This document shows, in pieces, positions 29,615 through 64,000 of a DNA stretch of 64,000 nt. The notes beneath the pieces are model-generated. The model did not search any database. It was given only the letters and a program-made list of their open reading frames with translations, and was not told the DNA's origin. The position numbers were made by a program, and so were the translations under genes. Within the stretch, counting starts at the first letter, position 1; each line of letters opens with the position of its first letter. This DNA is from Macrostomum lignano (Eukaryota). The stretch covers positions 88,943 through 152,942 of the forward strand of contig NIVC01002652.1 of NCBI GenBank assembly GCA_002269645.1, given 5' to 3'.

Positions 29615-29653
<39 letters not shown>

Positions 29654-33777: not shown

Positions 33778-33816
<39 letters not shown>

Positions 33817-33826
33817 GACTAACTAC

Positions 33827-33876
<50 letters not shown>

Positions 33877-33886
33877 GACTAACTAC

Positions 33887-33964
<78 letters not shown>

Positions 33965-33974
33965 GACTAACTAC

Positions 33975-34056
<82 letters not shown>

Positions 34057-34139
34057 GACTAACTAACTAACTAACTAACTCACTAACTCACTCACTAACT
34101 AACTAGCTAACTAACTAGCTAACTGACTAACTAACTAAA

Positions 34140-34188
<49 letters not shown>

Positions 34189-34193
34189 GACTG

Positions 34194-34234
<41 letters not shown>

Positions 34235-34283
34235 ATAAATAAATAACTAACTAAATAAATAAATAGCTAACTAACTAAATAAA

Positions 34284-34331
<48 letters not shown>

Positions 34332-39605: not shown

Positions 39606-40081
39606 CAGGGTTGCACTTGGGAGGTTTGAATTCCTAGTCTCAAATAAATTGTCAGCACTCATCAAAAAAATCTCAGAAAACGATCAACACGCTTGCCTCG
39701 CAAGATTAGACAATCGGATGTGTCTAATGGAACATCACATTTGGATTCAAATGGAGTGCGTTTTAATTTACGTTTTAAATTGATAAACTACGTGCTTCTA
39801 GAGCGTATTTCCTGAATCCTTTTAAGGGTTTAGACGAAAGCTTTTTATTAAACGCATCATTTCCTGCCTGTTAGCATTTTCATAGCAACGATTTGTTGAC
39901 TGCTCACAGCTTTGAAATAACAAACGGATTTTTTTCACCCTCCGGCGAATCACTTCTCTCGGCTAGCGCTTAACGCGTAGAAGCCTATTTAAATGGACTG
40001 ATTCGTTTGATAGCAGGTTTGAATGTTTTCTGAGACTATAGCTGCAATAACCGCTACCCGCTACAATCCAAGGCTGTAACG

Positions 40082-41098
40082 ATGAGCTCACAGAAGCTTT
40101 GGAAATCTGTTCTCATCGTGTTCGGCCTGCTGACAGGTGTCCGGTGCGCGCAGCAGACCGCAGTATATCAGCAGGCCGATGCCCAGTGCGCACCGGAAGA
40201 TTCACCGATAGTCCGAGCTCGAATCCTTGCAACGGCGACTACACCTTCGGCGACGAGTTGCGCGATAATGGCTTCGCAAACGGCGCAGACTGGCGCTCTG
40301 GTGGCGCAGTTCCGCCGGGGCAGCCGGCAGTGCACCATATTCCAGTTTCAATCCATCTGCCAGCACCTGATGCCTGGCAAAACCTCCGGCTGCTACGTTT
40401 ACTTTCGCTTTCCGATTGACCATGGATTGCTGAACGCCAAGCTCAGCAATGTGTGGGTGGGCGACCGCGCCGGCAAGCTGGAGAACCTGGTTTGCCAGGC
40501 CCATGAGGACACCAATCGGCTCTACCCGTTCAACATCCAGTGGAGCAGCGAGGGCGCCTATTTCGACGGCACAACGGCCTATGCGGTGCTGAACAAGTCG
40601 AGCCTGAACTTTGCCAGCGGACTCACCTGGCTGATGAAGCTAAAGAGGCAGCCTCAGGTTCAGCCGATCCTGGAATTCGCCGACTGCAACGATATAAACG
40701 GCGTCACCGGTTACGGCATTCACCTGTGGGAATATGCCGCCCCTGGTCAGCTGTACATCAGGGCCAACCGAATCACGGGAAGCCTGCTGCCGTTTGTCAA
40801 CTCAGCAACTGATGCGCTGCCGCTGGGCCAAAACGACTGGCTGAACATCGCCTTCACGGCCAATGGAAGCAACTTTGATGTCTTCGTGGCTGATTCCTTC
40901 CTGCCGAGGCACACCCTCTCTCTTTATAGCGACAACAACCCCAATCCCATAACCAACTCGAACGCCTGCCTGTACCTCGGAATGCGAGTGGAGCCAGCCA
41001 ACAATCCCAGGTTCAAAGGCACCATGAAGGCGCTGGCCTTCGCTGGGACGAGCATGTCGGAGGCGGAGATACGCGAGTTCTTCTCCATCTTTGAATGA
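40082..41098 (+). CDS. Secreted PAN/Apple-like + LamG/ConA-like lectin-glucanase fold protein (338 aa, intronless)
   Basis: Signal peptide MSSQKLWKSVLIVFGLLTGVRCA; PAN-like SATSCAIMA...FRRGSRQCTIF; LamG-like GAYFDGTTAYAVL, WLNIAFTANG, LYLG and FKGTMKALAF...MSEAEI. Confidence 0.75.
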   Translation: MSSQKLWKSVLIVFGLLTGVRCAQQTAVYQQADAQCAPEDSPIVRARILATATTPSATSCAIMASQTAQTGALVAQFRRGSRQCTIFQFQSICQHLMPGKTSGCYVYFRFPIDHGLLNAKLSNVWVGDRAGKLENLVCQAHEDTNRLYPFNIQWSSEGAYFDGTTAYAVLNKSSLNFASGLTWLMKLKRQPQVQPILEFADCNDINGVTGYGIHLWEYAAPGQLYIRANRITGSLLPFVNSATDALPLGQNDWLNIAFTANGSNFDVFVADSFLPRHTLSLYSDNNPNPITNSNACLYLGMRVEPANNPRFKGTMKALAFAGTSMSEAEIREFFSIFE

Positions 41099-43582: not shown

Positions 43583-46500
43583 ATGGAAGCTCATTCTGCA
43601 ACGGAGTCTGCAACAGCTGCTCAGCAGGAGCAAAAACCGGTGAGCAAATGCAGGAAGTGCAGCAGCCACCTTTTCAAATCAAGCGAAGCAAATTTTGAAT
43701 TTTTGAGAAGAGACATTTGTAACCTTTTGAATTAGGGAAAAAATTGAGCTTACAAAAAATCTCTCGAATTATGCAAATCAAAGCAGACGTCATGCTCTGG
43801 ATTAAGCCGACTGCAGTCGATAATTTGTAGAACGAGTCGACTAGAATGTCATAAAGCTCCTACCTTGGGCTTCTAGGGGGATAATATTGGGATTTACGTC
43901 TTCAATGGGTCGAAAAACTGACGTCGATCAACTGTTGTTCCGCGTTTCTAGGCAACTGCTCCGACAAGTTGCCGATTACAGACAGTCTGGTTCCTGGTTG
44001 CCCCACTGTTTGGGTAGCGTAAAGTATACATACGTTGAAGCGTATATTTCTGCCAATTGTACTTTTTGATGGGATGCAATACGAACGCGAAAATCATGCC
44101 AGAAGAGTAGAACAAAGGGGAACTACCTACTATGCACTCGCTGCCAACCAAATAATTATCAAACTGCTCGTACAATAACGCTAGGCTTAACTAGATGTTT
44201 TTTGTTTTAAATAGTCAATGCAACGACAAAAGAACAGAATGCGAGGGCATGAGTATTTCTAGGAAAGCAAAATCATAGAGAAGTTTAAATTGGCACCATT
44301 TTTATGAGTGTACAAAGACTAGTAGGTAAAGTAGAGTCTACAAGTCCTTAGATTATTTCCTCCCCTTCTTCTTTCCGAAAAAAAGAACACAATGGCTCTC
44401 TCGACGATACTTCGCTTGGCCTTTCAACTACCTCTTTACTAAAGGACATTGTGATGGTCGAAAATTGATATTAACTACAAGAATTTATGTTTTCAGGTTT
44501 GTAGTGATATTTTAAAGTACGAGCGTAAAGAAACAAAGCACCGATCTTCTATGATACAGAAACTTCTCAGAGCTTTTGATATTGGTTCGTTTTCTTACCG
44601 TAAAAAACGTAATTACGGGTTGCGAACTCCAGAAAAGCTACCTGGACGAGCTGCCGTACTACTCAAACTACCAACTGGCCGATGACGAGGTGCCCCTGGC
44701 CAAGTACCTGCTGCCCGCCGACTCTGCCGAAGTGCAGCGAGGCGTCGAGTCCGGCCGCTTCCCGACGCTGGCCGGCTTGGCGCGGCTGCAGCGGCAGCGA
44801 GGCCAGCCGCCCAATCCGTTGGGCGACGCGGCGAACGAGTCGCCTCCGGCTCCGTTTCCACCGCGACGCACCAAAACGGAGCTGCTCGAATCGAAGGACT
44901 TTACAGATACGGACAAGTTCGCCGAGTCGGTGACGCCGTTGCCAAGCGACGACTGGGAGCAGCTGGCGCAGCGGCTGTTCGAGCAGAGCCGCAGCAACCT
45001 CGAGAAGGTGAGGGTCGCGTTCTGCTTCACCTGCGCGCACCGGCAGCTGGCAGAGGTTGCAGAAGAATCTCTGGCATACAAAGCTATCCGGGAAAATGAG
45101 GCGACGGATGTATTTGAGAAGCTGCTTGGGTAAGTTCCACGTTCTGGTCGATGTTTTGGTCTTTTGAATCTTTACATAGAAACTTTTGACGTGAATATTT
45201 TAGTAGTGGCAAAGCAAAAAATGTTGTACTGTATAAGACCAGGTTACAAGTAGATTGTCGAATGAGTTCATCATATCCTCATAGGCGACCCTTAGACCCA
45301 TAGACAAATAGGAAGCCCGTCAGCGGCTGTACCAGCTTCAGGGCAGCATTTGCCGTGCCATCACAGGTGCGTACCCGTCCACCCCTTACGAGGGGCTGAA
45401 CACTATCCTTAACCTACCTCCGCTTCACCTATTTATTAGGGCGGAGGCTATGAAGTCTGCCTCCCGGCTTATCAGAGATAAAACGTTAAATAACGCGCCC
45501 TCTGGCTTTATGCCAATGAAAACATTAATCCCGCATATGGACTTTGTCCGCCGCGACCTTAACAACATCCACATGGACCTGGGCAATGTGGATAGTCGAC
45601 CTCCCGCCCTCAACATCAGGAGGGGCTTCAAGACCGCCATCCCTGGCCGAGACAACATTCCGCTGGATGTCGGTGTGAACCGGCGCAGCCAGGGCATTCA
45701 CTGCTTCACCGACGGCTCGCTGTTCAACGGCCGCGCTGGAGCGGGTATTGCCATTTTCCACGAGGGTAAGATGCTTCTCCAGGAAAGTCTGCACCTCGGT
45801 GAGAACACCTCAGTTTTCCAAGCTGAAATTTGCGCCATTGAGCAGTGTGCCCAGCAACTGTTTCAGGCGAACATTAATAATTTTGACATTAATTTCTACA
45901 CTGATAGCCAAGCTGCTATTAAGGCCTTAACCACTGAGAATATCTCCGCTGCTACAGTATCTCAATGCCACCGCAGTGTGCAATCTCTCTCAGTCCTTAA
46001 CAGGATTAGAATTATCTGGACACCTGGTCACAGCAACATCCTGGGCAACGAGCTCGCGGACTCTCTCGCCAAGGAGGGCAGCAACCCAGACGGCAACCAC
46101 CGTCTGATGAGGCTACCCACCCCCAGGTCGCAAGTCACCCGCCATATCAACAGGTGGCTCCATCAGCAGCACCAGCTCCACTGGAACAGCTGCACCGAGT
46201 ACAGGCAGAGCCGCTCTGCCATGCCTAACCTGAACAGGAAAGTCTCTGATTATCTGATTTCGCTTAACAGAACCGACCTCAGGGAGATGTGCATGGTCCT
46301 AACCGGCCACGGATTCTTCCAGAGACATATATCGTTGCAAACCGGTTGCCCTCCCACCTGTCCCTTCTGTGGCATAGGAGAGGAGACCGCGGAGCATCAC
46401 GTCACCTTCTGCCCTTACTTCAACAAGGCGCGGCACAAATACCTCGGCCACCCCCAGCGGATGGACGAGCTGACCACCGCGGACAATATCCGAGACCTCC

Positions 46501-49500
46501 GCGCCTTCGTCCGGGACTCCGGCCGGATGAGGGTCGCCGATGCCTCCACTGCGGACCTGCCGACTACTGGCGGGGACTGGGCGCACCCCCAAGGCTAATC
46601 CTTGTGCTCTTTTACCTTGGGGTTGCGATAGGGGCCTCACGGCCTATTCGCGGCGCCTGCGCCCCCCGTCAGTAGTAAGTAAGTAAGTAAGACCAGGTTA
46701 CAAGTAGATTGTCGAATGAGTTCATCATATCCTCATAGGCGACCCTTAGACCCATAGACAAATAGGAAGCCCTCTAAGAGCGTAGTACAGAGGCAAACCC
46801 AAAGGAATCCTCACAGTCGACGTTTCAAAATCAATGTTCCATGCTGTACGCTCATTATTCAATGCTTCGGAATCATTATTTAAGGCTACTAAAATTTTTC
46901 GCCACGCGTGAAAAACGAATCATTGTCTACCTCCAAAACCGAATACACAACTAACTATTATTCAAGGCTACTAAAATGCATTCATGGTACAATGGTTAGT
47001 GGTGTAGATGGTTTTTGAGGTTTCGTTTAGGTTTCGTGAGGTTTCGTAACGAAACGACAAGGATTCGTTTTTCGCGAGTGGCTACGCGCACTCGTCTCAT
47101 TGGCCATTAATTTAAATTCTCGCTTCATAATAGCTGTACGAGTATTGATTAAATTGTCTATAGTCGAAACAGGACTTTCAGTTAATGACCAGCCATTAAG
47201 CAAAGGTCATTACCGTGAAGTGACATTTCGATCAATAAAGTTTATTCAGCGAATATTTATCAAGACTATCTGATAATAAAAACAATCGTCCTTGTCTTTT
47301 GCATTGACTTTAGCATTTCGATTCGTTTCCAAGGATTCAAAACCAAATTTTTCAGCTGTGGAAAAGTGCCAAACAAGAAGCTTTACGGCTACAAAAAGGG
47401 TGCGAACTCCGACTCTGGCGTAAAGGCCGAACTCGGTGGCTGTTGGTTCGCGTGCTACGTTGAGGGCGAATGGCGATTCGTGGACCCGCACTGGGGTGCC
47501 ACGGCTGTGATGAATCACGATTCCGGCAGATATGGCTCCATTGACGATAAGGGCCGAGTCAGCAGTGCCAGAGAACAGAAGGGACAGAGCGTATTTCACC
47601 GTGATGAGTTCTACTTCCTGACTGATCCAGAAAGGCTGATCACAAACCATTGTCCACAGCAGCATGATCTGGAGTGGCAGCTGCTAGCGAGGCCACTCAG
47701 TATTGAAGAATTTGAACTGCTTCCTCACTACTTTGGAGGTTTTGCCAAAGAAATGGAATTCTACGATCTGGAGCCGATAAACTATCCTTATAACGTCATC
47801 GTAGCAAAGCCGGGACCCGTTGAGATTCTGTTGAAGGAGCGAGCGGTAGAACAGTATAAGTACAGCGGGCAGCTAAAGATACACAAGAAGCACATCAGCA
47901 GTGAATCGAAGACAGCCATTTTGAGTGCCTATCAGGAGAAGGCCTGCATCAGCAAGGGGATCCGTGTGTCAAAGGATACCGTCAAGTTCATCTTTGAGCC
48001 ACCATATCCAGGACAGTACGCTCTGGAAATCATGCTCTGGCGTCAGGTCAGTGAGGTTACGCTAACTGGATGTAAGTTCCTTACGTATACGATCCACTGC
48101 CCTCAAAACTGGGAATCGGTCGATGTCATCCCGGAGGGCCAGGAAGATCTTCGCGAGTTCGGACCAGGACAAGACCTTCAACGAGCTGGACTAACCTCAG
48201 AAGCGCCCGGAGAGCTGAAAGCTGGCGACGGAGAGGCATCGCTGGAAATTGCACCGCTTCAGGAGGACGAAAGACCTAGTAGTGGCCATCTGAGGTGAGT
48301 GAGTATGAGAGCCACATTCTATGCTGAGAAATCAGAAAGCAAACAGTTAGGGCATGCCTACTATTCAATACAATTCCCTGCAGACAACAAATCACCACAG
48401 CAAACAGACAAGAATCAGTTAGAATCTTCATAAAAACATCATCAGACCAGCAAGACATCATTCTACGATGTCTACGATTCTACGAAGACATCATCGTAAT
48501 ATTGATTTTTGTGGTTATACTAACCAACAGAGAAAAATGAATCAATAAGCAGCCAATTAAAAAATCTGATTCCGACAATATTTACATCGCAGAAATCTGA
48601 CGTGCCAAGCGCTGGGCCCGGACAACAAGCCCCTGCCGACGGGCAGCGTGCTCGTGTGGCGCGACGATCGCCGCAACGCCTTCCTGTTCCTGGCGCCCGA
48701 TTCCGGCTACTACGCTCTGGTGCTCTACGAGAACAGTCGGCCCGTCGGCCAGTTCCTGGTGGACGCCAGCAGCGAAGCCAAGGACGGCGCGAGCTTCCCG
48801 CTGCCCGACTGGAGCCGCGTTGGAGGTCTCGGACTCGCCGCTGCAAGCAAGGCGGACGGCGGAGGCTGTCGGCTGGTGCCACTGAGCCACCAAACGCCGT
48901 ACGTTCGAACCGAAGAGTTCGAGTTGGCGATGCGCTTCGGTGTTGATGGCGCAGGCGAAGAAGGCGACGCAGGCATCGATCTGAAGTCGGAGATGCTTGG
49001 TATCGGAGCAGACGGAGGGACCGAGTCGGTCGGCGACTACTCGTTAGTGAGCGGTGTCGAGGGCGGCGGCTTCGAGGTGCGGTGCCGGTTCCCGAGAGCG
49101 GGCCACTACCTGCTCCGCCTGTCGTTCCGAGAGAGCGGCGGAGACTGGCGCCCGTACTTCACGTACTTCGTGCGAGCGGTGGGCCAGCTGGACGGATCGG
49201 CATCCGCGTTTCCGAGCCTCGGAGCGGACTGGCCGGTCGGCGGAGCGCTCATCGAGCCGCTGGACCGCACGCTATCCGTTGGACAGCCGACGCCAATCCG
49301 CCTCCGCCTTGCAGACGCCGCAGCTATCGGCTCTGTGGAGGTGGTCGACGAGCGAAGCGGCAGTCGGGAGCCGTTGAGTCGCGACCCGCAGGACCCGCGG
49401 TTGTGGTTCGGGTCCGTGACGCCATCTGCGAGCACCGCCGATGGAACGAACGCTGCCGGGAGCGGCGGCGTGACGGTGGTGTCACGCGTCAACGACGGCG

Positions 49501-52500
49501 CTGAGACACAGCTTGTAAAGTTCGACGTCGAGTCGGAGAGCAGCTCGGAGGCCAAGGCGGCGGCACTGCGCGAAGCTCAGGAGCTGAATGAGCGACGTCG
49601 GGTGGCCGAGGAGAATCGGCAGAGGAAGCGGGAGAACCGACGCCGCCGCGAAGAGGGATTGGAGCCACTGCCTACCCAGGTGCATTTTTTAATCCTACTT
49701 GCACATGTATCTCAGATTTTTCCGATTGATTAGTAAATAATGGCACAGATTGATCGCTTATTTCACAAGTTACGGTTTTACTTTTATCTTTATGTAGGAT
49801 TCGCTTAAGAAATTGGCTGAAGCAGAAGCTGCTGCAAAAGCGGCGGCAGAGGCAGAAGCCGCAGCCAAAGCCAATGCGGCGTCCGACAAGACGTTTGAAA
49901 GGGTGGAAGTGGCTTCAAAAAAATCGACTGAATCGAAGACAGCTTCAAATGAGGCCATGAAAGCGGCATCCAGGGCGGAATCTGCCGGTCAGGCGGTGAC
50001 AACGGCGGGTGCCGCAGTAGAGGCGGCTGTTCAGTCAGCGACCGAAGCTGCCAGGACTGCGGCTGAAGCTGCGAAGTCAGGTGAAGTTAAAAAAGCTGCC
50101 AAGGCGGCGAAATTAGCGGAGGCAGCCGCTCTTGAAGCGAAATCTGCCGCTCAGACTGCAGCGAGTGCCGCGACCGATGCGCGTACGGCCGCCAAAGCGT
50201 CTGCGGAGGCGGAGCAAAAAGCCAAGACGGCGGCCGATGCGGCGAGAAACGAAGCGGACCAAGCAGCAGTGGAAGCTGAGAAATCAGGAAATGACGAAAC
50301 CAAAAAGGCCGCTCAAAATGCCGCAACACTGGTCGATGAGGCGCAAGCTAAATTGAAGACGTCAAAGGAGGCTTCAGAAAAGGCTGCCGCGGAAGCTGAC
50401 GCCGCAAGTAAGAAGGCCGCGAAGGCCTCCTCAGATTCTGAGGCTGCAAGCAAATCGTCGGCTGAAGCGAATGCAGCAGCGACAACAGCTGCTGAAGCAG
50501 CAGCAGCGGCAAAGGCAGCCGAGGCAGAAGCTGCGGCGGCAGCGAAAGAAGAGGTCAAACTTCTCATTTCTCAGCTAGACGAGGCGCTGCTTAGTAGAAA
50601 AGTTGTTCAGTTGCGCAAGGCGATCAAGGCTTTGGAGCCGCACGAGTTTGGATTGCACCGCTACCACGAAACGAAACTGCGGGAAGCTCGGCTGACACTG
50701 ACTGCGCTGCAGAATAGGAAGGGTGCGTGAGGAACGGCGAGGTTGTACAGTCCGATTTCAATGAGGAGTTCATAGTTTCGTGGTTTACATTCAGGTTACA
50801 TTCAGTTGAAATTCTCAATGAAGTCATACGAAAGCCTGATACAGGTATAGAGGATTAGAGACAAACCAGATTGGAACCTGATGATTTTGAATGCTTTTGT
50901 TTATCTGATGCATCATTCTTGAGTTACCCGACCAGCTCACCTCCCACCCCTGCAGACATACGGGACGCCATGGCGGACGCTCAGCGAGCCCGCAGCACCG
51001 ACCGCCTGCGCGCGTTGGTGCACCGTCTGGAGGCTGAAGCCGAGTCGCAGCCGCTGACGGAGGCGCAGCTGGCGCTGTTCCGCGAGGACCTGCGGCTCGC
51101 CAGAGAGGCCATCCAGCGAGATGACAAGCTGAAGCGAATTCCCTCACACCGGCTGGAGATGAGTCCGAAGAGTCTGTCCGAGCTGAGGCAGTACAGCCGG
51201 CCAGTGGAAACGGTGCACCGGACGGTTCAGGCGCTGCTGCTGCTGCTCGGGTACTACGAAAAGCGCACACGGGTGAGCGATCCGCGCTTCATCATTGCCG
51301 CTTCTAAGGATTCAGTCTGAGTCTGGGACAAACTATTGAGTTAATCAACCACATTAGGTGTCAAAAGGATTTTTACAAGGTGTTTAGCAATTGCTTAACA
51401 ATGTCCCTTTTGGCGCGAATTTGAATTGGATTTATTTTAATGAACGATTCTTGATGATTTATTAATTATATGGCCCTCTAAAGCAGTGATCGAATTACAC
51501 TACTGCAAGTAGTGGATATTGGTGGAGTGGATTACCATGCATTTTTTTCCACCTGACAGAAATGGCCTCGCTGCCAGCCTCTGTTGAAGAGCATCAACAA
51601 GTCTGTCGCGGACTTTCAGCCGCGCTTCGTTGATCCGCGCATCGCCGCCCGAAGTTCGGAGATTCTGGGCAGCATCGACAAGCGCGAGATCGCCCTGCAG
51701 AGCGCTGCCGCCTTCGCCTTCTATGAATGGGTTTGTTCGAGTTCGAATAAGCAACGTTTTTGAAATTTCGTTCGTAAGCGGAATCGAAAATACGATCTTA
51801 TCGCCCGAAAATACGGGTACTTGAGCCTTGACCGCACAGCGTTCATGTGACAGTCGTTTCCTACAAATGAATTAAGCCGAAAATCATGATCTCACATGTT
51901 ATCTTTACGTTAGACACCATGCATTAGCTACACCCATATCATGCATCCCAAGGTTGGGAGTTTTGGCCTGATCTGACTAATCACGCACAAGTCGCAGACT
52001 CACCATCCGGAAGTTATTAGCGAAAATCGTAATTTCGATTCCGTGGTTAATTGAGTAAATTATTTACAGGTCTTGCTTCATTGGGCCGATAAATAAGAAA
52101 TTCTAGCTCTGAGTTTGCTACATATTGGCCTATTGGTGTGTAAATTTTTGCCTAAATCTGCAGAGAATTGAAGGGTCTCTAAAAATGTTTGACTGCGCTT
52201 ATGTAGAACCTAGAAACCCTGGGGCTACAGGGAACATACTTGGATGGGATCTTCCCTGTGTGCCTGGTCGAACTGCTCTGACAGGATATCGATAGCAGTC
52301 GGCAATTCGGGCTGCATTTTGTCGCTTACAGTAAGTTGACATCCCACTTGGCTTCACAGATTCTAAAATACTTATTCTAGTATTTGTGCTTGGCTTCCGG
52401 TTCCGACTTCTTTGACTGAACCCCCTGTCTCAAAGAGTTTTGACTTTAATTTTCTAATATTCGAATCCTTGCAGGCGGTCAAAACAGCGAACTCGATCAA

Positions 52501-52642
52501 GGAGGCGTCAACACCGGAGACCTTCGTCCCGGCCAGCATGAGGCAGCAGATACAAATCCTCGGCGTCACCGAAGAAGAGGACGCCACGTGGGACTTCGAC
52601 GACGAAGGCATCCGCAGGAGGTCGTCCGTGGTGCCTAAGTAG
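43583..52642 (+). CDS. KY/hillarin-like transglutaminase-like protein, copy 1 (about 1386 aa): TGase-like core, Ig-like repeats, Ala-rich rod, dynein MTBD-like C-terminus
   Basis: Exons 43583-43639 (least certain), 44633-45129, 47356-48294, 48593-49679, 49798-50722, 50956-51272, 51560-51730 and 52475-52642; all phases consistent, 4161 nt total. Motifs [65 protein letters not shown] and [17 protein letters not shown]. Confidence 0.85.
45234..45318 (+). repeat. 85-bp direct repeat, left copy (target-site duplication candidate)
   Basis: Identical by eye to 46688-46772. Confidence 0.92.
45319..46690 (+). mobile_element. 5'-truncated non-LTR retrotransposon with RNase H and C-terminal zinc finger (LOA/R1/I-like group)
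   Basis: Open frame 45321-46598: post-[11 protein letters not shown]...[10 protein letters not shown], RNase H TDGS / QAEI / TDSQA / WTPGH / NELADSLAK, and CPFC...H...C. Ends in a (TAAG)n tail. Confidence 0.92.
46688..46772 (+). repeat. 85-bp direct repeat, right copy
   Basis: taagaccaggttac...ggaagccc; the first 3-4 nt overlap the TAAG tail. Confidence 0.92.
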
Positions 52643-53172
52643 ACTCCAGTCTATCTAAAGACGACGAAAGGCCCCCCAGAAAAACGACTGTGATTTTCCT
52701 AGATGCTGCACAATAGTTATCCAAGGACGTGACACAATCCTGGCTTTCTAAGATCACTTTAATGATCATCAAGCTCATTAAGGAGGGAAAAGGGTTTACA
52801 TCCTCTTTCTTGTAACCAATAATCGTTATTATTTACATTTAAACATGTTTCTTTATATACGAGTAGGTTCTTTGTTTTATGAGCTAAAGTGCCACATGTA
52901 CTTTTAATATATATATCTTTTCCACTTAACCGAAGAGAAGTATATACGAACTAAATAATAATGGCCTAGATTATAGCATTGCAAAGAACTTTTACCCAGA
53001 CACAATGACAAGTCAAAACGGCCATTATTACACCATTCAGCGGCAGATTTTTCCAATTGATAAGAGCAGGCATACTGCTATGATTTTATTAAGCTAATTA
53101 AAAGTTTGACTAAGTTATAGACTCGCCTTTTATCTTATCCGATAGCGAATTCAACTGGCCCTCGCCACGCGT

Positions 53173-53808
53173 AATCAATGTACACCATACTCTCTGTCTA
53201 AGTGACCAATCAGTTCATCCACCCCAATCAATGTACACCATACTCTCTGTCTAAGTGACCAATCAGTTCATCCACCCCAATCAATGTACACCATACTCTC
53301 TGTCTAAGTGACCAATCAGTTCATCCACCCCAATCAATGTACACCATACTCTCTGTCTAAGTGACCAATCAGTTCATCCACCCCAATCAATGTATACCAT
53401 ACTCTCTGTCTAAGTGACCAATCAGTTCATCCACCCCAATCAATGTACACCATACTCTCTGTCTAAGTGACCAATCAGTTCATCCACCCCAATCAATGTA
53501 CACCATACTCTCTGTCTAAGTGACCAATCAGTTCATCCACCCCAATCAATGTACACCATACTCTCTGTCTAAGTGACCAATCAGTTCACCCACCCCAATC
53601 AATGTACACCATACTCTCTGTCTAAGTGACCAATCAGTTCATCCACCCCAATCAATGTACACCATACTCTCTGTCTAAGTGACCAATCAGTTCACCCACC
53701 CCAATCAATGTACACCATACTCTCTGTCTAAGTGACCAATCAGTTCATCCACCCCAATCAATGTACACCATACTCTCTGTCTAAGTGACCAATCAGTTCA
53801 CCCACCCC
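53173..53808. repeat. 53-bp minisatellite x12 between the two KY-like paralogs
   Basis: Unit aatcaatgtacaccatactctctgtctaagtgaccaatcagttca(t/c)ccacccc; no spacers. Confidence 0.97.
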
Positions 53809-54763
53809 ATCTCTCGTTCAATTTAAGTGTAAAAAACGACTTTCTAACTCGTCCTTGTGTCTGTCTGCTGGGTAAAAGTTCTTTATAACGTGCTTTTATA
53901 GCATGCTGCATCGTTGAATAATGGCCAGAAACACACGTGCTACGCGCACTCGTGTTTTTCGCCATTATTAAACTCCGCAACATACTATACAATCTACCAT
54001 GCTGTTCGATTCTTTTAGAACAGATCGCGTTCCTAGATTTTTAAGAGAGTTGATTTTCACATCTAGCTACTTAGCAACAGTGAAAAGTCGCCACCCTTTG
54101 CCCCAGCGAGCAGTGTCTTTCGACCAGCGTCTATCACCTGGCCAACCATTTTGATAGTAAAAAAGCTTGAAAAAACAATGAAAACCGGGCGGAAGCTTCA
54201 AATCCATCCGATCTTTGCCTCCACGAGTCCACTCCTCCAATCCCTCCTCACCCAGCCCAACTCTGCGTCCCGTGGCGCAAGTTGCGTCACTCAAAAATCA
54301 ATATACTGAGCTAGAATTTACTGCGCATTCTCAAATGGTGACGACTTTTTAATTTTGTTGAGTATAGATGTGTCTGCTCCATTCCCAACCTTCTCCTCTT
54401 ATTTATGATTCAATGATTACCAAGTTTTTCGATAGAATTCTCGCATTAATTTGTGACGGAAGTCAACAAGCGGTCTCAATAAACTTTTGCCTGATTTCGC
54501 CTAAAGAGATATGGTGTGAGATTCTTCTTTTCTGAAGTTCTCTTCAAGGTAAAATTACTAAATTAGATTCAAAATTTGATGAGCTGGGCAAGAGATAAGA
54601 ACTCTTCAAAAGCTGATACAGTATCTAAGAGACACTCTGTGACAGCGCAGCGCCAACGGTTAAACACTTCTTGAAAATATTTAAGCATTGGAAACTTGAG
54701 CGAGCAGAGAAGATCCAGGCAAGAGAAAAGGCTTCAGTGATTAGACAGTATCCGCTCCCGACC

Positions 54764-57700
54764 ATGGAAACTGCTGAGTCTGGCATGGTAAGTACTGGCA
54801 CACTTAAATTTCAATTAGCATTGAGTCGTGTTTACAATCCGATTGTTGGTTTCTTTTCATTCAAATAATAATTCATTCATTGAATTTGACTGCATTCTTC
54901 GCTCGTTCCAAAACAAGATTTTGCCTCAAATTTTTTGTAAGTACCGGGTACGACTCTCAGACCCACCAGCTCGTCTTTGACTCCTGTTGTCCTTCATATT
55001 CATCCTCCATCCAACCCCCCCCCCCCATGATACCTATCATGTCGTCTCCAAACCTATTATATCGTCTCCATACCCACCATCTAGTCTCCATACCCTCTGT
55101 CTAGTCTCAATACCCACCATCCAGTCTCCATGTACTCCATCTAGTCTCCATACCCTCCATCTAGTCTCCATTACCCTCTATCTAGTCTTCAAACGCCTGA
55201 GTAGTCTCTAAGCTGGTCCGCAGACATATTTGGTTAGCAGACCTGTAATTGAGCGCAAGGTTGCTTGCTGCTTTCAGTTAAGATGCGCTGAACAGAAATT
55301 TACAATTTAGAAATTTAGCAGTTTTGTCTGAGACAGTGAGCAAATGCTTTTTGTATCAATTGACTTAGGCGAGCTACCTGGACGACTTACCGTACTACTC
55401 CAACTACCAACTGGCCGATGACGAGGTGCCCTTGGCCAAGTACCTGCTTCCCGCCGACTCTGCTGAAGTGCAGCGAGGCGTCGAGTCCGGCCGCTTCCCG
55501 ACGCTGGCCGGCTTGGCGCAGCTGCAGCGGCAGCGAGGCCAGCCGCCCAATCCATTGGGCGACGCAGCGAACGAGTCGCCGCCGGCTCCGTTTCCACCGC
55601 GACGCACCAAAACGGAGCTGCTCGAATCGAAGGACTTTACAGAGACGGACAAGTTCGCTGAGTCGGTGACGCCGTTGCCAAGCGACGACTGGGAGCAGCT
55701 GGCGGAGCGGCTGTTCGAGCAGAGCCGCAGCAACCTGGAGAAGGTGAGGGTCGCGTTCTGCTTCGCCTGCGCGCACCGGCAGCTGGCAGAGGTTGCTGTA
55801 GAGAAGCAACCGTATCAAAATATTCGACTTGGAAACTGCAGCGAGGTTTTTGCCGCGCTACTCATGTAAGATTGCCAAGCCATACTAGAAATCGCTCACT
55901 CGCACCAAAGTTTCAGGTTCCAGAATAAATAAAAATGCAATATTTGACGCGCTTTCAGCAATTATCTACGAGTGCGTCACTAAATTTGGTAACCCACAGT
56001 AAGACAGGCCTGCATGACATTCGAGTTGTGCATGCCAACTATTGTTAAGTGGGCTGAGGACCCAACTGCAAGGCCATGAATGATACACGTATTTCACCAA
56101 CTCTCTTTGATCATACATGCGCACAATCGGCACAATCAGCACTGAGCCTCAGTGCAGCCTTGCCAGGCCTCCAAATTTCATCAGCGCGTCGACCGCATGT
56201 GCCTGCATCAGCTGTGACTTCGTTGGTCACTGGCCTTCACCGAGGCGGAGCTTCTGAACATTCAACAGGTGACACCAGGTAACTATGGACACCCTGTTGC
56301 AACAACAACAACAAAGTACTTCACCCGCCAGCCACGCAGTGGCTAGAAAGAGGGGAAAAGTCAGAGAGCGCGTCTCTGGGCAAAGCCCTCAGAAAGTCAC
56401 AACCCCCAGCTTGGTCCAGGGCGCCAGCATCGGTCAAAAGCCTATCAGGGTATCTCGCCGTTCGCCCTTGGCTTCGCCTGCGCGGTCCCTGCAGCTTGAG
56501 CAGCAGCACCTCGTGCAGCGGCTCAGGGCAGCGAGCCTCCGACCGGATGACGTGGCCAGCCAGTCGAAGTCGCCGCAGGTCAGAAGGCCGCATCATGCCC
56601 TCGTGTAGAAAGCGGCGTTGGTCTCGCTGCCTGAACCGCTGCGCACTCCGAAAGCCCACGCAGCATGGCCGCATGCGCAGCGTCTAGCTGCCTCTCCAAA
56701 GCGTCCGTCAGGGTCCAGATCTCGGCGTTGTACAACAAGACAGTCTCAACGACTACCTGAAACAGCCGAGCTTTGAGCCCGTCATCCAGGGCCTCAGAAT
56801 GGAGCGCGGAGCGCACAGAACGAAACGCGGCCCATGCCAGGCCTTGTCTTCTCACCAGGTTGTCGGCAACGTCCGGCACGAGGCCGCCGAGGTACAGGAA
56901 CCGCTGGCAACGGGTAATCATGATTGCCTCTCGGCAGCGTCTCGGTAGTTGATCTCGACAGGCAGGTTGGAGGACACCGTGAAGACTACCGTCTTCCGTG
57001 CGTTCAGCATGAGGCCGACTCGCGATGCTGCTGCCGTCAGGCCATCCAGCAGCCGCTGAGCGCCTTTTGCCGACGATGACAGCAGCGCGAGGTCGTCCGC
57101 GCAGCCGAGAATGGAGAGCCGCTACTCCGGGTGCCACCGATTTATGCGTCTTCGCAGCAGGAAGCCGTTGGGTACGCCGGTCCTCAGTACCCAATCCAGA
57201 CCAAGCACAAACAGGAAAGGCGCCAGAGTGTCACCCTGCAGCACGCCTGACGACGTGCTAAATTGGTCCGACAGTCCATCTGGCGTCATCACCGAAGCGG
57301 TCGTATCCTGGTACATCAACATGATGGCGGAAATCAGTTGCTCCGGTTGCGGATTTCTCTAGTTTCGCTGATCAAGCCTTAGTGGGCGAATCTCAACTGC
57401 TCGACATCTTCAGCTAGTCTCTCAAGCATTCCGTCATCATCCCGATGCCGTCGACACCTTCAACAGATAGCCCAGATGACTATGCATTTTTCTTCTCTAG
57501 ATACGAGCTACATTTCTGAAACATAAAATTTTTTACCAGTACCTGTTGAAGGACAGAAGCTCTGCCTGGGTGAAGGCCAGTGACCAAAGAAGTCACAGCT
57601 GATGCAAACACGTGTAGTCGATGCGCTGATGAAATTTGGATGCTTGGCAAGGCTGCACTGAGGTGGAGTGCTGCTTGGCGCACAGGGGTGTACTGAATGC

Positions 57701-60700
57701 ACTAGGGAAACTTGGGAATACTCGGGGAAAGAGTCGACCTTCTGGTAGAATCGTTGAATATCTCGACAGTCCAAAAAGCTTGATTTTGTTTGTGAAGGTG
57801 CGCAACAAAAGTTTAGCCCGTTTTCTTGAATTTCGTGTGCCTGCGTTGCTCCGTTCTGGCGCAGCAAAAAAGTTGTCAGGGAGGGGGGTAATTATACCTT
57901 GATAGGTCGACGGGCGGAAAAATGGCTTCGGATTCTTACTGTTAAATAGTCTATGCAAAAAATCCTCTATTAAATTGGGCACTCCTTTCCTGTGTACTAT
58001 TTAACTTGAATAATTTGAAACATTTGCTGATATCATGCGGGAATTATTGAAAAGATCACTTTGAAAATTGCTTGAAAATTTCACCTGACCCTATCGGACA
58101 CAATTTAGCATAGCCGGTGTGCCGATGCAAGTAATTACCGGCTACAAGAAGGGCATCGGTTATGAGTCTGGGCTCAGGGCACCACTTGGCGGCGTCTGGT
58201 TTGCCTGCTACGTCGAGGGCGAATGGCGATTCATAGATCCGCACTGGTCCGCGCAATCCGTCAGCGGTTTCGAGGCAGGCAACTACAGACAGGTGGATGA
58301 GCGCGGCCTTGTGAATGATGTAACAGAAGTCGGCGGCACCACAGTCTACGATCTCAACGAGTTCTGGTTCCTGACTGACCCGCACCAGTTCGTTGTCAGT
58401 CACTTCCCCAGCGAAGACCAGCTCGAGTGGCAGCTGCTGGCCAGGCCGCTGCAATTTGAAGAGTTCGAAGAAATGATCGACTACTTTGACGGCACGGAAA
58501 CGGAGATGAACGTCTACCAGCTAGAAACAGTCAGTCATCCAAAAAACGTCATCATTTCAAAGCCCGGATCCGTAGAAATCCTGCTCCGAGAACTTACTAA
58601 TGAGCAGTACATGTACGAAATGCTGCTGAAAATACACAAGAAGCACATTGCTGACGGATCGAACTTGGCGCATTTGACTGCCTACCAACAGAAGGCCTGT
58701 GTCAGCAAGGCTATTCGGGTGTCCAAGAGCACCGTAAAGTTCATATTCGAGCCGCCGCATGCGGGACAGTACGCCCTGGCCATCAGGCTCTGGCGTTACG
58801 TGTCAGATGAAAGATTAAAAGGCAGCACGTTTGTCACTTACGCTGTTCACAGTCCACAGAGCTGGGTCTCAGCCAATTTTATCCCGGATGGCCATGAAGA
58901 TCTGAACGAATTCGGCTCCGGTCAAGAAATGCGTGAAGAGGGGCTCAGCTCAGATGAGTCAGGCGAACTGAGGGCAGCCAATGGAGAAGCAACTTTCGAG
59001 ATTACTGCACTAGAAGACAGGTTTGGCATAAGGTGAACACTATTGTTAAATTTCGTACGCTTCTACTAAAATTGAAGGTTAGAATACTTCGAATACAGGT
59101 TTCTATTAGCAGGAAATTGGCAGCATAGTAGGCAATTATGAGAAGAGACACTAAAATAGAGACTGTAGCATTATTTCTTACTTTTGAAATACAGGCGTAG
59201 CTACTGAACTATTACCAATTGCAGAAATCTGATGTGCCAAGCGCTGGGTCCGGACAACAAGCCCCTGCCGACGAGCAGCGTGCTCGTGTGGCGCGACAAT
59301 CACCGCAACGCCTTCCTGTTCCTGGCGCCCGATTCCGGCTACTACGCTCTGGTGCTCTACGAGAACGGTCGGCCCGTCGGCCAGTTCCTGGTGGACGCCA
59401 GCAGCGAAGCCAAGGACGGCGCGAGCTTCCCGCTGCCGACTGGAGCCGCGTCGGAGGTCTCGGACTCGCCGCTGCAAGCAAGGCGAACGGCGGAGGCTGT
59501 CGGCTGGTGCCACTGAGCCACCAAACGCCGTACGTTCGAACCGAAGAGTTCGAGCTGGCGATGCGCTTCGGTGTTGATGGCGCAGGCGAAGAAGGCGACG
59601 CAGGCATCGATCTGAAGTCGGAGATGCTGGGTATCGGAGCAGACGGAGGGACCGAGTCGGTCGGCGACTACTCGTTAGTGAGCGGTGTCGAGGCGGCGGC
59701 TTCGAGGTGCGGTGCCGGTTCCGAGAGCGGGCCACTACCTGCTACGCCTGTCGTTCCGAGAGAGCGGCGGAGACTGGCGCCGTACTTCACGTACTTCGTG
59801 CGAGCGGTGGGCCAGCTGGACGGATCTGCATCCGCGTTTCCGAGCCTCGGTGCGGACTGGCCGGTCGGCGGAGCGCTCATCGAGCCGCTGGACCGCACGC
59901 TGTCCGTTGGACAGCCGACGCCGATCCGCCTCCGTTTCGAGGACGCCACAGCTGTCGGCGCTGTGGAGGTGGTCGATGAGCGAAGCGGCAGTCGGGAGCC
60001 GTTGAGTCGCGACCCGCAGGACCCGCGGTTGTGGTTCGGGTCCGTGACGGCATCTGCGGGTAACACCGATGGAGCGAACACTGCGGGGAGCGGCGGCGTG
60101 ACGGTGGTGGCCCGTGTCAACGACGGCGTTGAGACACAGCTTGTAAAGTTCGACGTTGAGTCGGAGAGCAGCGCAGAGGCCAAGGCGGCGGCACTGCGCG
60201 AAGCTCGGGAGCTAAACGAGCGACGTCGGGTGGCCGAGGAGAATCGGCAGCGGAAACAGGAGAACCGACACCGCCGCGATAAGGGACTGGAGTCGCTGCC
60301 TGTTTGGGTACTTAATAAAGTTGTTCTGCCATCGGTTTTATCTCGAAATGCATTTGTTCGAAATATTTTTGGTATTTTTTATCCTTTTCCTGACAGAGTC
60401 ACGCTGAGGTGAGAGCTGCTGCCGATTTGGCTGCAAAAAGGCTGGCCTTGGCGTACGAGAAAGAAGAAAAAAGAGCAAAAGCTTTTGCGAAATCAGCTGC
60501 GGCAGAAAGAGCTCAAGCTCAGAGCCTAGCAGCAGCAAAAGCAGCGGCTGAAGCCAAAGCGGCTTTGAAAGCGGCAGCAATGGAGGCATCAAAGTTGGCG
60601 GCTTTAGCACTCGCGGTGTCGAGGGCGGTGGCCGAGTCCCAATCGGCAGTATTGGCGGCTGCTGATGAGGAACTGGAAACAAAGACCGCGGCTGATGCGA

Positions 60701-62652
60701 AGGATATCTCGGCGGCATCGTATCGATCGGAAATGACTGAGAAGGCGGCTGTCAAAGCCAAATTAGCGGCTGAGTCAGCGAACGACGTGGCAGCCGAATT
60801 GCAGGCGCTTGCAGCTGCAGCAGCAGAAGAAAAAGTGACTGCCAGTTCGGCAGCTGATGCGGCTTCAAAAGCGGCTGAGGCTGCAGCCTTCGATGCGGAG
60901 ATCGCCGGTTCTCCGCTACCCGACGAGGCTGCAAAGTTTGCATCATCAGCGTCGCACGAAGCCGAAGCTGCTGCCAGGGCAGTCACCGAGATCGCTGCAA
61001 AGTCAGCCACCGAGGCCTCCATCGCGAAGAGGGGAGCCCGCATGGCGGCTGCTTCGGCGGAGACGGCAGCAAAGTCAGCTGCGGTTGCGGCTGCTGCAGC
61101 GCAGGAGGCCACAGAAGCGATTGCGGCGGAAAAAGCTGAGCTGAATTATTTGATTGCTGAGCTGGACGTGGCCTTGTTGGACCGAAAGTTAACTCGGGTG
61201 CGCAAGGCCGTTGAGTCGTTGGAGGCTCGCGAAAAGGAGCTGCGCGGCAGTCAGTCGAGAAAGCTGAAGGAGGCACAACAGACTTTAACGGCGCTACAGA
61301 ATAGAAAAGGTTCTGTTTTTCTGTTGACAAAACAAGGCAGTTGTGCTTAAATTCTGATGTATTACTGAAGGTAGCTTGTATTGTAAAACCGTCACATTAA
61401 TTTGGCCAGTGAAAATTTCGATCCGTGCTCTATCCAACCGCAGACCTCCGGGACGCCATGGCGGACGCTCAGCGAGCCGCAGCACCGACCGCCTGCGCGC
61501 GTTGGTGCACCGTCTGGAGGCTGAAGCCGAGTCGCAGCCGCTGACGGAGGCGCAGCTGGCGCTGTTCGCGAGGACCTGCGGCTCGCCAGAGAGGCCATCC
61601 AGCGAGATGACAAGCTGAAGCGAATTCCCTCACACCGGCTGGAGATGAGTCCGAAGAGTCTGTCCGAGCTGAAGCAGTACAGCCGGCCAGTGGAAACGGT
61701 GCACCGGACGGTGCAGGCGCTGCTGCTGCTGCTCGGGTACTACGAAAAGCGCACACGGGTGAGTCAAGGACTACCCAAGTAGAAGGGCGGGAAACTACAT
61801 TTTCGGGGAACTTTTGAGAGGCTTGTTTTATTGAAGAAATACATTACGGAGAATGGAGATTTTCATTTTTTCAGCGTAAAATTTGTAATGATCCATTTGA
61901 TGGCGGACAAACCCAATGATCATTTTGATACGACTTGATTTTCTGTTAGTTCTATAGATATTCGTAGAGCTTTTTTGTTCAGAAAGTTTGTATTTTGTGT
62001 TAATTTTATGAGCGCAATCCTAATTACATGTCCAAACATCGTAAAAATGACACAACTTAATTCATTCGCAATTTCGCATTGAGGGCGGAGAAGCTTTTTA
62101 AATGCTAGGTCGGTGTGTAGTGTACAGAGTGCAGAGCTTGTGTTCTATAGATTGTACTGTGCAGTCATTTTGCTGCCCCTCACTGGGTCTGTTTACTCGT
62201 GAACTTCTCCACGTTACCAACAGAAGTGGCACCGCTGCCAGCCGCTGTTGAAGAGCATCAACAAGTTTGTCGCGGAGTTTCAGCCGCGCTTCGTTGATCC
62301 GCGCATCGCCGCCCGAAGTTCGGAGATTCTGGGCAGCATCGACAAGCGCGAGATCGCCCTGCAGAGCGCTGCCGCCTTCGCCTTCTACCAATGGGTTCGT
62401 TTGAGGAATTTTTCTTGACAATGAGAGTGCAGCATGGCAGCCTGACTCCTTCATCAATCAATTTTACTCCAGGCGGTCAGGACCACGCAGTCCATCAAGG
62501 ATGCGACCTCAGTGGACAGTTTTGTTCCAGCCAGCATGGTTCAGCAAAGGTGGATCCTTCGGGTCACGATGGAGGAGGACTCTGCGTTGGACTTTCAAGA
62601 CAAGGGCATTCGCAAGAAGAGTGCACGTCGTCCTCGGACTTCAAAAATTTGA
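54764..62652 (+). CDS. KY/hillarin-like protein, copy 2; as assembled it carries six 1-nt deletions (sequencing error or pseudogene)
   Basis: Exons 54764-54787 (uncertain), 55369-55865, 58109-59032, 59225-60307, 60397-61309, 61444-61758, 62224-62394 and 62473-62652; same intron phases as copy 1. Deletions versus copy 1 at about 59436, 59692, 59721, 59780, 61477 and 61567. Confidence 0.8.
55010..55190. repeat. Degenerate repeat (ccatctagtctccatac)
   Basis: About 6 imperfect copies. Confidence 0.75.
56137..56270 (+). repeat. About 134-bp inverted repeat, left arm
   Basis: Reverse complement aligns with 57541-57673 with scattered mismatches. Confidence 0.85.
56300..57350 (-). mobile_element. 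Degenerate 5'-truncated RTE-like LINE (reverse transcriptase fragment)
   Basis: GVLQGDTLAPFLF, LGCADDLALL (YADD mutated), GLMLNARKT, FLYLGG, VLLYNAEIWTL and LAGHVIR across frameshifts; (TTG)5 tail at 56314-56300. Confidence 0.88.
57541..57673 (-). repeat. About 133-bp inverted repeat, right arm
   Basis: Partner of 56137-56270. Confidence 0.85.
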
Positions 62653-63151
62653 ACTTTAAACTCGCTCTTCTTTGCTAAAAGTAGGGCAAAGAGTATTTTA
62701 AAACTGAATTTTCAAAACGCATTGAAATAATGGAAATCATCTCAAGTGAAATTTTGCAGTCAAGTTTATCAATCAATTGAGACTACCAGATTCAAACCTG
62801 TCGAATTCCATATGATTTTGTAAACATTACAGAAGATTTTGACTTTTTCATCGTTTTAGCAACATTCGTGTACTGTACGTGCTTTAAATACCTGCCGAAG
62901 TTTTTTCTGTGCAAACGAAAGTCCAAGACTGCCACAGACAACTTTTGGGCTTTCGACCACAGACGAATTTTGTCGGTATTATAGAATTTAACCAGCACGA
63001 GTGAACGTGAAGGAATCCATTGACATATGGCCAAGCATTCTTAAATGGAATTTACTGCACGGCTTGGGATTTACTGCACAGTCGCGTTATCTATCTATGT
63101 CTATGGCTAAAACCAGAAGAATGCTTTGCCCATAAATCAATGAATCTATCA

Positions 63152-63218
63152 CTAGGTTTCGAGTGCGTAAATAGTCTTAGCACGAGTGCCATAGACTATT
63201 TACGCACTCGAAACCTAG
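63152..63218. repeat. Perfect 26-bp inverted repeat with a 15-nt spacer
   Basis: ctaggtttcgagtgcgtaaatagtct (63152-63177) and agactatttacgcactcgaaacctag (63193-63218). Confidence 0.95.
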
Positions 63219-63447
63219 AGATAAATCTACCATTGTTAGATGAGTCATCGCAGGGACAACTAAAACCCTCGGGACGCAAAACGAGCCAATTCATGGCAAA
63301 AAATCTGAGGGGCTCGCTTAAAAGTATTGTTCTATGGCTTTTTCAAGTTTCTCTGCTATCAGGCAAATTAAAATTGCTTTAGTTGCGGCCAGCAGTGAAG
63401 CTAAGCTGAACTATATCAAGAAAAGCATTTTTTATTCACTTGATGAA

Positions 63448-64000
63448 ATGCCAAGAAAGTGCAGCGTATTTCCGTGCTCGTCAAATTACAACTCTGAAGC
63501 CGTTTCGAACACGGACATTTGCGTTTCCCAGAGATCCACAGGAGCGAGAGCGATGGAGAAAGGCGCTGCCAAATATTCTCCAGGTAAGAAACCAGATCAT
63601 TTGCTGTCATTACTGCTGCATAATTCCGCTTCAATTCTGCATGCCAGTCTCGTCCAAACAACTTGAAACCCAAAATTTATTATTTTAGAGAGTGACTGCA
63701 ATATGGGCGTGTGCGTAAAGCATTGGCCAAGCGATGCTCCAATGGTCAAGAAAAACTCTACCGAAAGGCCAATTAATCCTCCTTCTGTTTTTAATGGAGT
63801 TCCTAGCTCGTGTTTTGTTCAGAACCAAGGTACGTAACTTAAAGATTGCTCAACACTAAGCGTCTATATCGATTTTGCCGCTCACAATTATCTTACTTTT
63901 TATTTTACTCGTATTTTAGACCAACCGACAGGCCGAAAAGCGCGCGTGTTCTTTCTGACGCGAGGTGCGGCGACATCGATGAGATGGACGCTTTTCAGCT
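63448..64000 (+). mobile_element. 5' part of an intron-containing THAP-domain gene, probably a P-element-like transposase; frameshifted and cut by the window end
   Basis: MPRKCSVFPCSSNY (frame A), TFAFPRDPQERERWRKALP (frame B), donor gtaaga at 63584, then GVCVKHW...RPINPPSVF (about 63689-63829) and a further exon from 63920. This gives the C2CH THAP signature; the catalytic domain is outside the window. Confidence 0.7.

Follow-up and report, generated by a model that had tools for sequence, protein, structure and literature searches.

What might a microtubule-binding domain (MTBD) of the dynein type be doing at the end of a protein that is not a dynein? The question is raised by a gene of the flatworm Macrostomum lignano, at 43583-52642 on the plus strand of the window that we analysed (the last 64 kb of contig NIVC01002652.1, assembly GCA_002269645.1; all positions are those of this 64,000-nucleotide stretch), and in particular by the interval 50956-52642, which is the 3' end of that larger gene and holds the last three of its eight exons. 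To our knowledge, the dynein MTBD is normally regarded as confined to dynein heavy chains, in which the AAA+ ring, some 15 nm distant, sets its affinity by making the coiled coil of the stalk slide. What we describe here is new in that it places a known domain in an undescribed, conserved and motor-less context: from N- to C-terminus the product has a transglutaminase-like core, KY-type Ig-like domain(s), a spacer of about 390 residues rich in Ala, Glu and Lys, and an MTBD module of about 135 residues. An original prediction, made from the DNA letters alone, had proposed such a scaffold and seen in it a static microtubule tether; its observation is confirmed and its interpretation is partly supported.

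Homology of the C-terminal module

The module consists of a CC1 stub of about 25 residues, a globule of six helices (H1-H6) and a CC2 stub of about 12-20 residues, and it shares with the dynein heavy-chain MTBD (Pfam MT, PF12777; structures 3ERR, 6RZB and 6KIO/6KJN) the placing of a six-helix globule between CC1 and CC2, the basic charge, and the order and spacing of the signature E-x-R-S...PP...LLG...W...S...W. A word-indexed homologue search returned almost no relatives outside M. lignano, and the family came to light when 1.84 billion representative proteins were searched exhaustively by HMMER, the query being a profile of three Macrostomum sequences. It has 187 representatives at E < 1e-3, with none above 2303 residues among the 150 matches listed, so that none of these is a full-length dynein. 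The domain was aligned from 60 relatives, the window sequence first, to give a profile (A2) whose best 60 of 85 matches in the PDB are all MTBD regions of dynein heavy chains, headed by the yeast MTBD (6KJN/6KIO) at E 4.9e-14. Contamination of this profile by dynein fragments was considered and ruled out: a control profile from 27 relatives whose parent protein has a KY Ig-like domain, and which therefore cannot be dynein fragments, still matches the yeast MTBD at 45.8 bits (E 4.5e-11 at PDB size) and the mouse MTBD at 35.5 bits. In addition, hhalign of A2 with the mouse dynein-1 MTBD returns a probability of 97.3 % and E 2.4e-11 over 100 columns.

Does the predicted fold agree? With a shallow three-sequence alignment AlphaFold2 was unusable (predicted local distance difference test, pLDDT, 49), and with the A2 alignment it gave, for a 142-residue segment of the window protein, a model with pLDDT 93.7 and a predicted template-modelling (TM) score (pTM) of 0.83. 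In this model six short helices lie between two long ones, at the N- and C-terminal ends (helical positions in segment numbering: 2-22, 33-40, 47-59, 64-78, 80-85, 94-105 and 109-137). Foldseek ranks 1-28 for it in the PDB are without exception dynein MTBD or stalk structures, including 6RZB, 8PTK, 9FQR, 3ERR, 5AYH, 3WUQ and 4RH7, at TM-scores of 0.46-0.71 (mostly about 0.6-0.7) and probabilities of 0.95-1.00; the first matches outside dynein are unrelated helical bundles with TM-scores below 0.3. As to affinity state, 6KJN fits better than 6KJO, but 3ERR fits about as well as 6RZB, which is ambiguous between high and low affinity and is not relied on here.

The Pfam MT model gave a divided answer. 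It had been proposed as a check alongside profile and structure comparison, and on the window sequence it fails: the C-terminus has no match to PF12777 even at E <= 10, and thus does not reach the gathering threshold, whereas the family profile and the AlphaFold2/Foldseek comparison do match the dynein MTBD. The supposition that automated annotation might already flag the fold holds for relatives, 18 of the 60 matching MT individually, if weakly, at E <= 0.01 (best 4.7e-7) and one full-length protein, P0035, passing the gathering threshold with 26 bits against a cut-off of 24, but not for the window protein. The missing match, and the standing of the window protein as a divergent member of the family of orphan MTBDs (as we call those outside dynein), speak against our interpretation and have to be set beside the rest. 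As a separate observation, the relative P0153 has a precomputed Pfam label, PF28481.1, which is not in the copy of Pfam used here, and a recent curated family that covers the orphan domain may exist.

Because the family profile, the control profile, hhalign, the Pfam matches of relatives and the AlphaFold2/Foldseek results agree, we regard it as established from sequence and predicted structure, at the profile and structure level, that this C-terminus is a homologue of the dynein heavy-chain MTBD, as had been claimed for it. That a helical, coiled-coil-like sequence merely mimics the MTBD pattern by chance or composition we consider vanishingly improbable and already refuted, for while the window sequence alone gets no better than E 0.34 (phmmer against the PDB, with human dynein-2 MTBD and the correct region aligned), and the three-sequence Macrostomum profile loses the dynein match and finds spurious archaeal DNA polymerase II matches instead, dynein stands alone among the 60 best matches of A2, the control profile, hhalign and Foldseek all select it over unrelated bundles, and the signature residues of the MTBD are invariant or almost so in the family.

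For the comparison of residues, the sequence and numbering of the mouse dynein-1 MTBD were checked against the PDB, the sequence was aligned to the family, and the columns were tabulated. The signature positions read as follows (mouse residue; family; window protein):
E3304; kept in 100 %; E1244
R3306; basic in 78 %; R1246
P3311; kept in 100 %; P1251
P3312; kept in 68 %; Val
G3327; kept in 93 %; G
W3333; kept in 97 %; W1276
S3384; kept in 97 %; S1322
W3393; kept in 98 %; W1331

The gene and the rest of its product

Do these exons belong to the KY-like gene at all? The gene at 43583-52642 has eight exons, and all of its seven introns are GT-AG and phase-consistent, giving an uninterrupted open reading frame of 1386 residues with its own start and stop. 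The NCBI annotation of NIVC01002652.1 has a 1386-residue product at the locus that ends at window position 52642, the same in length and stop as our spliced model, and the annotated M. lignano homeologue P0185 (BOX15_Mlig000318g3, 1386 residues) is 95 % identical to the model in an alignment that is gapless over 1367 residues and crosses every junction. The exons are these:
43583..43639, plus strand: exon 1; start codon and first 19 residues, an exact match to the N-terminus of P0185; donor CCG/gtgagc
44633..45129, plus strand: exon 2; N-terminal region and first half of the transglutaminase-like core, from splice phases and alignment with Pfam Transglut_core relatives
47356..48294, plus strand: exon 3; second half of the transglutaminase-like core and the KY-type Ig-like domain, from Pfam, tblastn with P0006/P0013/P0017 and alignment
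48593..49679, plus strand: exon 4; further beta-rich sequence, in which Ig-like_KY matches weakly a second time, and the charged spacer from about residue 817 on; gapless to P0185
49798..50722, plus strand: exon 5; Ala/Glu/Lys-rich spacer ('rod'), assigned from composition
50956..51272, plus strand: exon 6; end of spacer, CC1 stub (from L1207, at 51069), MTBD helices H1 and H2, with E1244, R1246 and P1251 equivalent to dynein E3304, R3306 and P3311; ends ...EKRTR at 51272 (CGG/gtgagc)
51560..51730, plus strand: exon 7; MTBD helices H3-H6, KWPRCQ...YEW (acag/AAATGG ... AATGG/gtttgt), with Q1280 and with W1276, S1322 and W1331 equivalent to dynein W3333, S3384 and W3393
52475..52642, plus strand: exon 8; CC2 stub to about residue 1342 (52507), then a 44-residue tail with a 13-residue motif; AVKTAN...VVPK* (tgcag/GCGGTC), stop TAG at 52640-52642

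The last three exons splice in frame through canonical junctions, the first 2 nucleotides of exon 6 finishing the codon that the last base of the exon ending at 50722 opens (G/gtgcgt). The C-terminal peptide quoted in the original prediction is present exactly as written, its junctions canonical and phase-consistent, and it runs to the stop. Exons 6-8 are thus part of a single KY-like gene, as the junctions, the annotated product, P0185 and the same domain order in other phyla all say. It is very improbable, and already largely refuted, that the gene model is an artefact in which the MTBD-like exons form a separate gene or a decayed dynein fragment. Such a view could point to the tandem copy of the gene downstream (gene 2), for whose MTBD exons the public annotation gives just a 'partial' product of 172 residues and whose reading frame shifts within exons, but the first copy has none of these faults: its junctions are in phase, it agrees with the annotated product and aligns without gaps to P0185, the arrangement of transglutaminase and Ig-like domains with an MTBD is found again outside its phylum, in 39 proteins or more, and the parts scanned, residues 1-860 and the last 217, show no AAA or dynein family.

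The head of the protein identifies it, as had been proposed, as a scaffold of the KY/hillarin family. Ig-like_KY (PF23265) matches residues 322-436 (47765-48109) at 30.0 bits against a cut-off of 27, the second match, in exon 4, being weak (E 0.11), and relatives go by names such as 'hillarin-like', 'HIL-like' and 'KY'. Transglut_core (PF01841) has no Pfam match in the window protein, where the core is too degenerate, and the region aligns with the cores that Pfam does detect in P0006, P0013 and P0017. At what we take, from the motifs of transglutaminase cores, to be the catalytic positions, the Cys is replaced by Ala176 (ENEATDVF, 45101-45103; Tyr in aligned relatives, Cys in gene 2) and the His by Cys214 in exon 3, His being found in none of the aligned members; the Asp position has Asp in most aligned members, the window protein included. 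With both Cys and His substituted, the head is a pseudo-enzyme. It presumably serves as a peptide-binding module, in line with the proposal of Zhang and Aravind for inactive ciliary transglutaminase-like domains (PMC3495828).

Between head and MTBD lies the spacer, at about residues 817-1206. Over residues 861-1206 Ala makes up 33.5 %, Glu 11.8 % and Lys 10.7 %, and Pro and Gly together number seven in 346 residues (2 %). Of the long helical rod that had been claimed to precede the MTBD, then, the long segment rich in Ala, Glu and Lys and poor in Pro and Gly is there, and by its composition it is probably helical.

The claim that no AAA+ motor is present also stands. Pfam scans of residues 1-860 and of the last 217, which did not extend to the spacer that separates the two, detect neither an AAA nor a dynein family, and the product, at 1386 residues, with its own start and stop and with a chain that ends 55 residues past the Trp of H6, is not a dynein heavy chain; it is a cytoplasmic, non-motor protein. 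Compared with dynein, it has no AAA+ ring (in the parts scanned), no linker and no tail, its stalk is reduced to stubs, the chains of the family end about 12-60 residues past H6, and the MTBD is C-terminal in the family, whereas in dynein it is embedded between AAA4 and AAA5. In the tail, at 52517-52555, lies the 13-residue motif, the Macrostomum form of a PAxxxxQ[KR]x[IL][LF] pattern seen after the MTBD in at least nine relatives, and this may be a remnant of dynein CC2 around a conserved Pro.

Relatives and possible ligands

How widely is this architecture shared? Ig-like_KY is found in 39 of 60 matches with more than 300 residues upstream of the MTBD, and most of those checked also have a Pfam transglutaminase core. 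The combination extends beyond the window and the flatworm M. lignano to amphioxus, to the annelids Helobdella, Owenia and Dimorphilus, and to a range of molluscs (Patella, Lottia, Gigantopelta, Pinctada, Argopecten, Pecten, Mya, Ruditapes, Mizuhopecten, Batillaria, Babylonia and Nucella). Source records call these relatives 'hillarin-like', 'HIL-like protein', 'KY' or 'Kyphoscoliosis peptidase', or leave them uncharacterised; indeed, most orphan-MTBD proteins are labelled 'hypothetical', 'uncharacterized' or merely 'KY-like Ig-like domain-containing'. No vertebrate, arthropod or nematode is among the 30 representatives whose source records were looked up, which are a sample and not a survey.

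The orphan MTBD also has other N-terminal partners, namely CLCA with VWA and mucin-like sequence, both in amphioxus, and GAF with a Dpy-30 motif in the glaucophyte Cyanophora, and a chytrid, Phlyctochytrium, and a sponge, Oscarella, have proteins with it as well. In the Branchiostoma CLCA and VWA proteins P0077 and P0102, a hydrophobic, signal-like N-terminal segment and one transmembrane-like segment precede a charged region and the C-terminal MTBD; the mucin-like P0037, of the same genus, shows the same order from its one transmembrane-like segment onwards. Since the transmembrane-like segment lies upstream of the module, the module would be cytoplasmic in these amphioxus proteins, and all three are candidate membrane-to-microtubule linkers. 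Across architectures the MTBD is almost always terminal, within 60 residues of the chain end in 95 of 128 relatives, and the post-MTBD helix is as short as had been supposed, with a median of 32 residues from the H6 Trp to the end of the chain. No conserved sequence upstream of the MTBD was found across architectures beyond close paralogues.

Two M. lignano paralogues, P0187 and P0188, are built on the TGc/Ig-like scaffold too (identity 33-34 %, query coverage 62 %) and carry at the C-terminus, in place of the MTBD, calponin-homology (CH) domains in up to four stretches. CH domains are filament-binding modules, as the MTBD is predicted to be, and this suggests a modular exchange of the cytoskeleton-binding end of the protein; with CH domains and an MTBD on a common scaffold, a 'filament-binding end' becomes the common theme.

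KY/hillarin-like scaffolds are known for their parts in Z-disc, septin and axon-hillock biology. With the KY/hillarin/Cyk3 family the window protein shares KY-type Ig-like domains (PF23265), preceded by what alignment with relatives indicates to be a transglutaminase-like core, and it differs in the substituted catalytic Cys and His, the degenerate core, the long Ala/Glu/Lys spacer and the dynein-type MTBD. Hillarin is associated with the axon hillock and with Pnut, a septin (PMC3081291), and Cyk3 acts in cytokinesis (PMC3718969). Among annelids, the Helobdella relative carries the MTBD. In the literature searched, an MTBD is not described for KY, hillarin or Cyk3, and no paper that connects the dynein MTBD with hillarin, with KY or with transglutaminase-like proteins came up in full-text searches, nor did any that treats PF12777 outside dynein or mentions the M. 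lignano gene identifiers. The same searches found no functional description of such a protein, as the original prediction had surmised. The original hillarin paper, by Ji et al. in 2001, is reported to name an 'H domain' beside W180 domains, which may or may not be the MTBD module.

What, then, would the module bind? The best explanation as a whole, and one that we consider fairly probable, is that the protein is a static, constitutive microtubule tether. The module would bind the microtubule lattice in the manner of the dynein MTBD, on the acidic surface of tubulin, and the protein would hold its head, a peptide-binding pseudo-transglutaminase with Ig-like domains, some tens of nm off the microtubule. 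In dynein the switch of affinity is a movement of H1 and CC1 that is driven through the stalk (PMC6629372). Here the helix past the MTBD is so short that a long antiparallel stalk like that of dynein cannot form, and a CC2 stub together with the lack of an ATPase means that nothing drives the registry, from which anatomy the terms 'constitutive' and 'locked' follow; without an AAA+ ring, and without a long antiparallel stalk along which the CC1/CC2 registry could slide, binding would be constitutive instead of nucleotide-gated. There is a precedent of sorts in the motor-homology domain of Vik1 and Cik1, in which a kinesin microtubule-binding fold is reused without its ATPase as a passive microtubule anchor. 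This is an analogy, the fold and superfamily being different and Vik1 and Cik1 being partners of an active motor, of which nothing here suggests an equivalent.

Microtubule binding itself is the most likely function that we can predict for the module, and we lean towards it by a modest degree on evidence that is mixed. In its favour, the domain is basic, the equivalents of R3306 and R3342 are kept across the family, the module is predicted to be cytoplasmic in every architecture, and the M. lignano paralogues have CH domains, another filament-binding module, in the same position. The core of the window domain has a net charge of +7 and an isoelectric point of 9.9 (mouse dynein-1: +4 and 9.2), and across the family the median charge is +4, with 72 % of members net positive. 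In dynein-1, K3298, K3299, R3342 and R3382 have been named as key contacts with tubulin or its E-hook (PMC6125590), and R3382 forms an affinity-tuning pair with E3378 (PMC4230729), at which last position the window protein has Arg. These and nearby positions compare as follows (mouse residue; family; window protein):
R3337, in H3; Gln in 67 %, as in yeast dynein; Gln
R3342; basic in 52 %; gap
K3298; basic in 20 %, consensus D; S
K3299; basic in 17 %, consensus Q; P
position 3300; basic in 48 %; K
R3382; basic in 12 %, acidic in 35 %; L

The family thus departs from dynein at K3298/K3299 and R3382, basic residues near the former being displaced by one position, and a basic 'GKxSLKRR' insertion, found between H3 and H4 in most relatives, is missing from the Macrostomum copies. 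These points weigh against the tether, and they bring in its serious rival, a change of ligand, in which the dynein-type fold was kept and the scaffold docks on septin filaments, on another cytoskeletal polymer or on a specific protein. We think this unlikely, if far from negligible. It gains from the loss of the tubulin-contact positions, that of R3382 being often acidic, and from conserved features that are the family's own and not dynein's, both the insertion and the PAxxxxQ[KR]x[IL][LF] tail motif. It also gains from Drosophila hillarin, which acts via the septin Pnut according to literature cited in PMC3081291. However, conservation in the family is best in H1, the start of H3 and H6, the helices turned towards the microtubule in dynein (PMC6629372), the domain shares the basic charge of dynein MTBDs, and no evidence was found that links the MTBD module itself to septin binding.

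What does the orphan-MTBD family bring? It adds a new type of candidate microtubule-associated protein, amounts to a natural experiment on an MTBD whose registry cannot be driven, and suggests a way in which, in many invertebrates, KY/hillarin-like scaffolds may attach to the cytoskeleton, beside the candidate membrane-to-microtubule linkage by the CLCA/VWA and mucin-like proteins of amphioxus. A broader idea, which we put forward tentatively and would doubt a little more readily than believe, is that orphan dynein-type MTBDs make up a class of microtubule anchors without a motor that has so far gone unrecognised, and whose age is such that a chytrid and a glaucophyte have it in common with animals. 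In it, KY/hillarin-like scaffolds and the single-pass membrane proteins of amphioxus would be tethered to microtubules or axonemes by a naturally 'registry-locked' MTBD. Hillarin-type proteins would then have a direct link to microtubules, and dynein research a natural MTBD in a constitutive state.

Tandem copy and neighbouring sequence

Downstream of the gene, on the same strand, lies its second copy:
55369..62649, plus strand: gene 2, tandem paralogue of the same architecture; MTBD exons at about 61564-61758, 62221-62394 and 62473-62649

At the C-terminus it matches exactly the annotated 'partial' protein P0001, the annotation record of which (NIVC01002652.1) spans window 51591-64000. Relative to the first gene it has changes of frame within exons at about 59430, 59720-59780 and 61565, and it is either a decaying copy or one affected by indel errors close to the contig end. 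Unlike the first gene, it keeps Cys at the transglutaminase catalytic position (GNCSEVF). The two copies are near-identical in the DNA of their MTBD exons (51081-51730 against 61567-62394), with a proportion of synonymous differences (pS) of 0.02-0.11, and strongly diverged in the last exon (52475-52642 against 62473-62637), where pS is 0.63 and the nonsynonymous proportion (pN) 0.29. This contrast suggests gene conversion confined to the MTBD exons, or a mosaic history. The ratio pN/pS between the copies was set aside as uninformative, the one part being near-identical and the other highly diverged.

Intron 2 of the first gene contains, at 45312-46595 on the plus strand, an open frame of 428 residues with an RNase H domain (PF00075, E 1.9e-13) and a weak RVT_3 match, the remnant of a retroelement that shares the strand of its host gene; the matching intron of gene 2 (about 55.9-58.1 kb) likewise has long open frames. 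Further upstream, at 40034-41095 on the plus strand, a 354-residue open reading frame has a weak Concanavalin-A-like/Laminin_G_3 match (E 9.5e-5, under threshold) and is probably a separate gene. Large simple-repeat arrays lie at 29167-30127 ((TGTC)~244), 31543-31941 (a 34-nucleotide minisatellite, 12 times), 33758-34331 ((ACTA)~143) and 36975-37422 (a 31-nucleotide minisatellite, 14 times). Among them, at 35980-36750 on the plus strand, is an open reading frame with a Hemingway/CFAP97 domain (PF13879, E 1e-15), of a cilia-associated family, which runs directly into a (GTCA)131 microsatellite at 36219-36742 that would be translated as a long SVSQ repeat.

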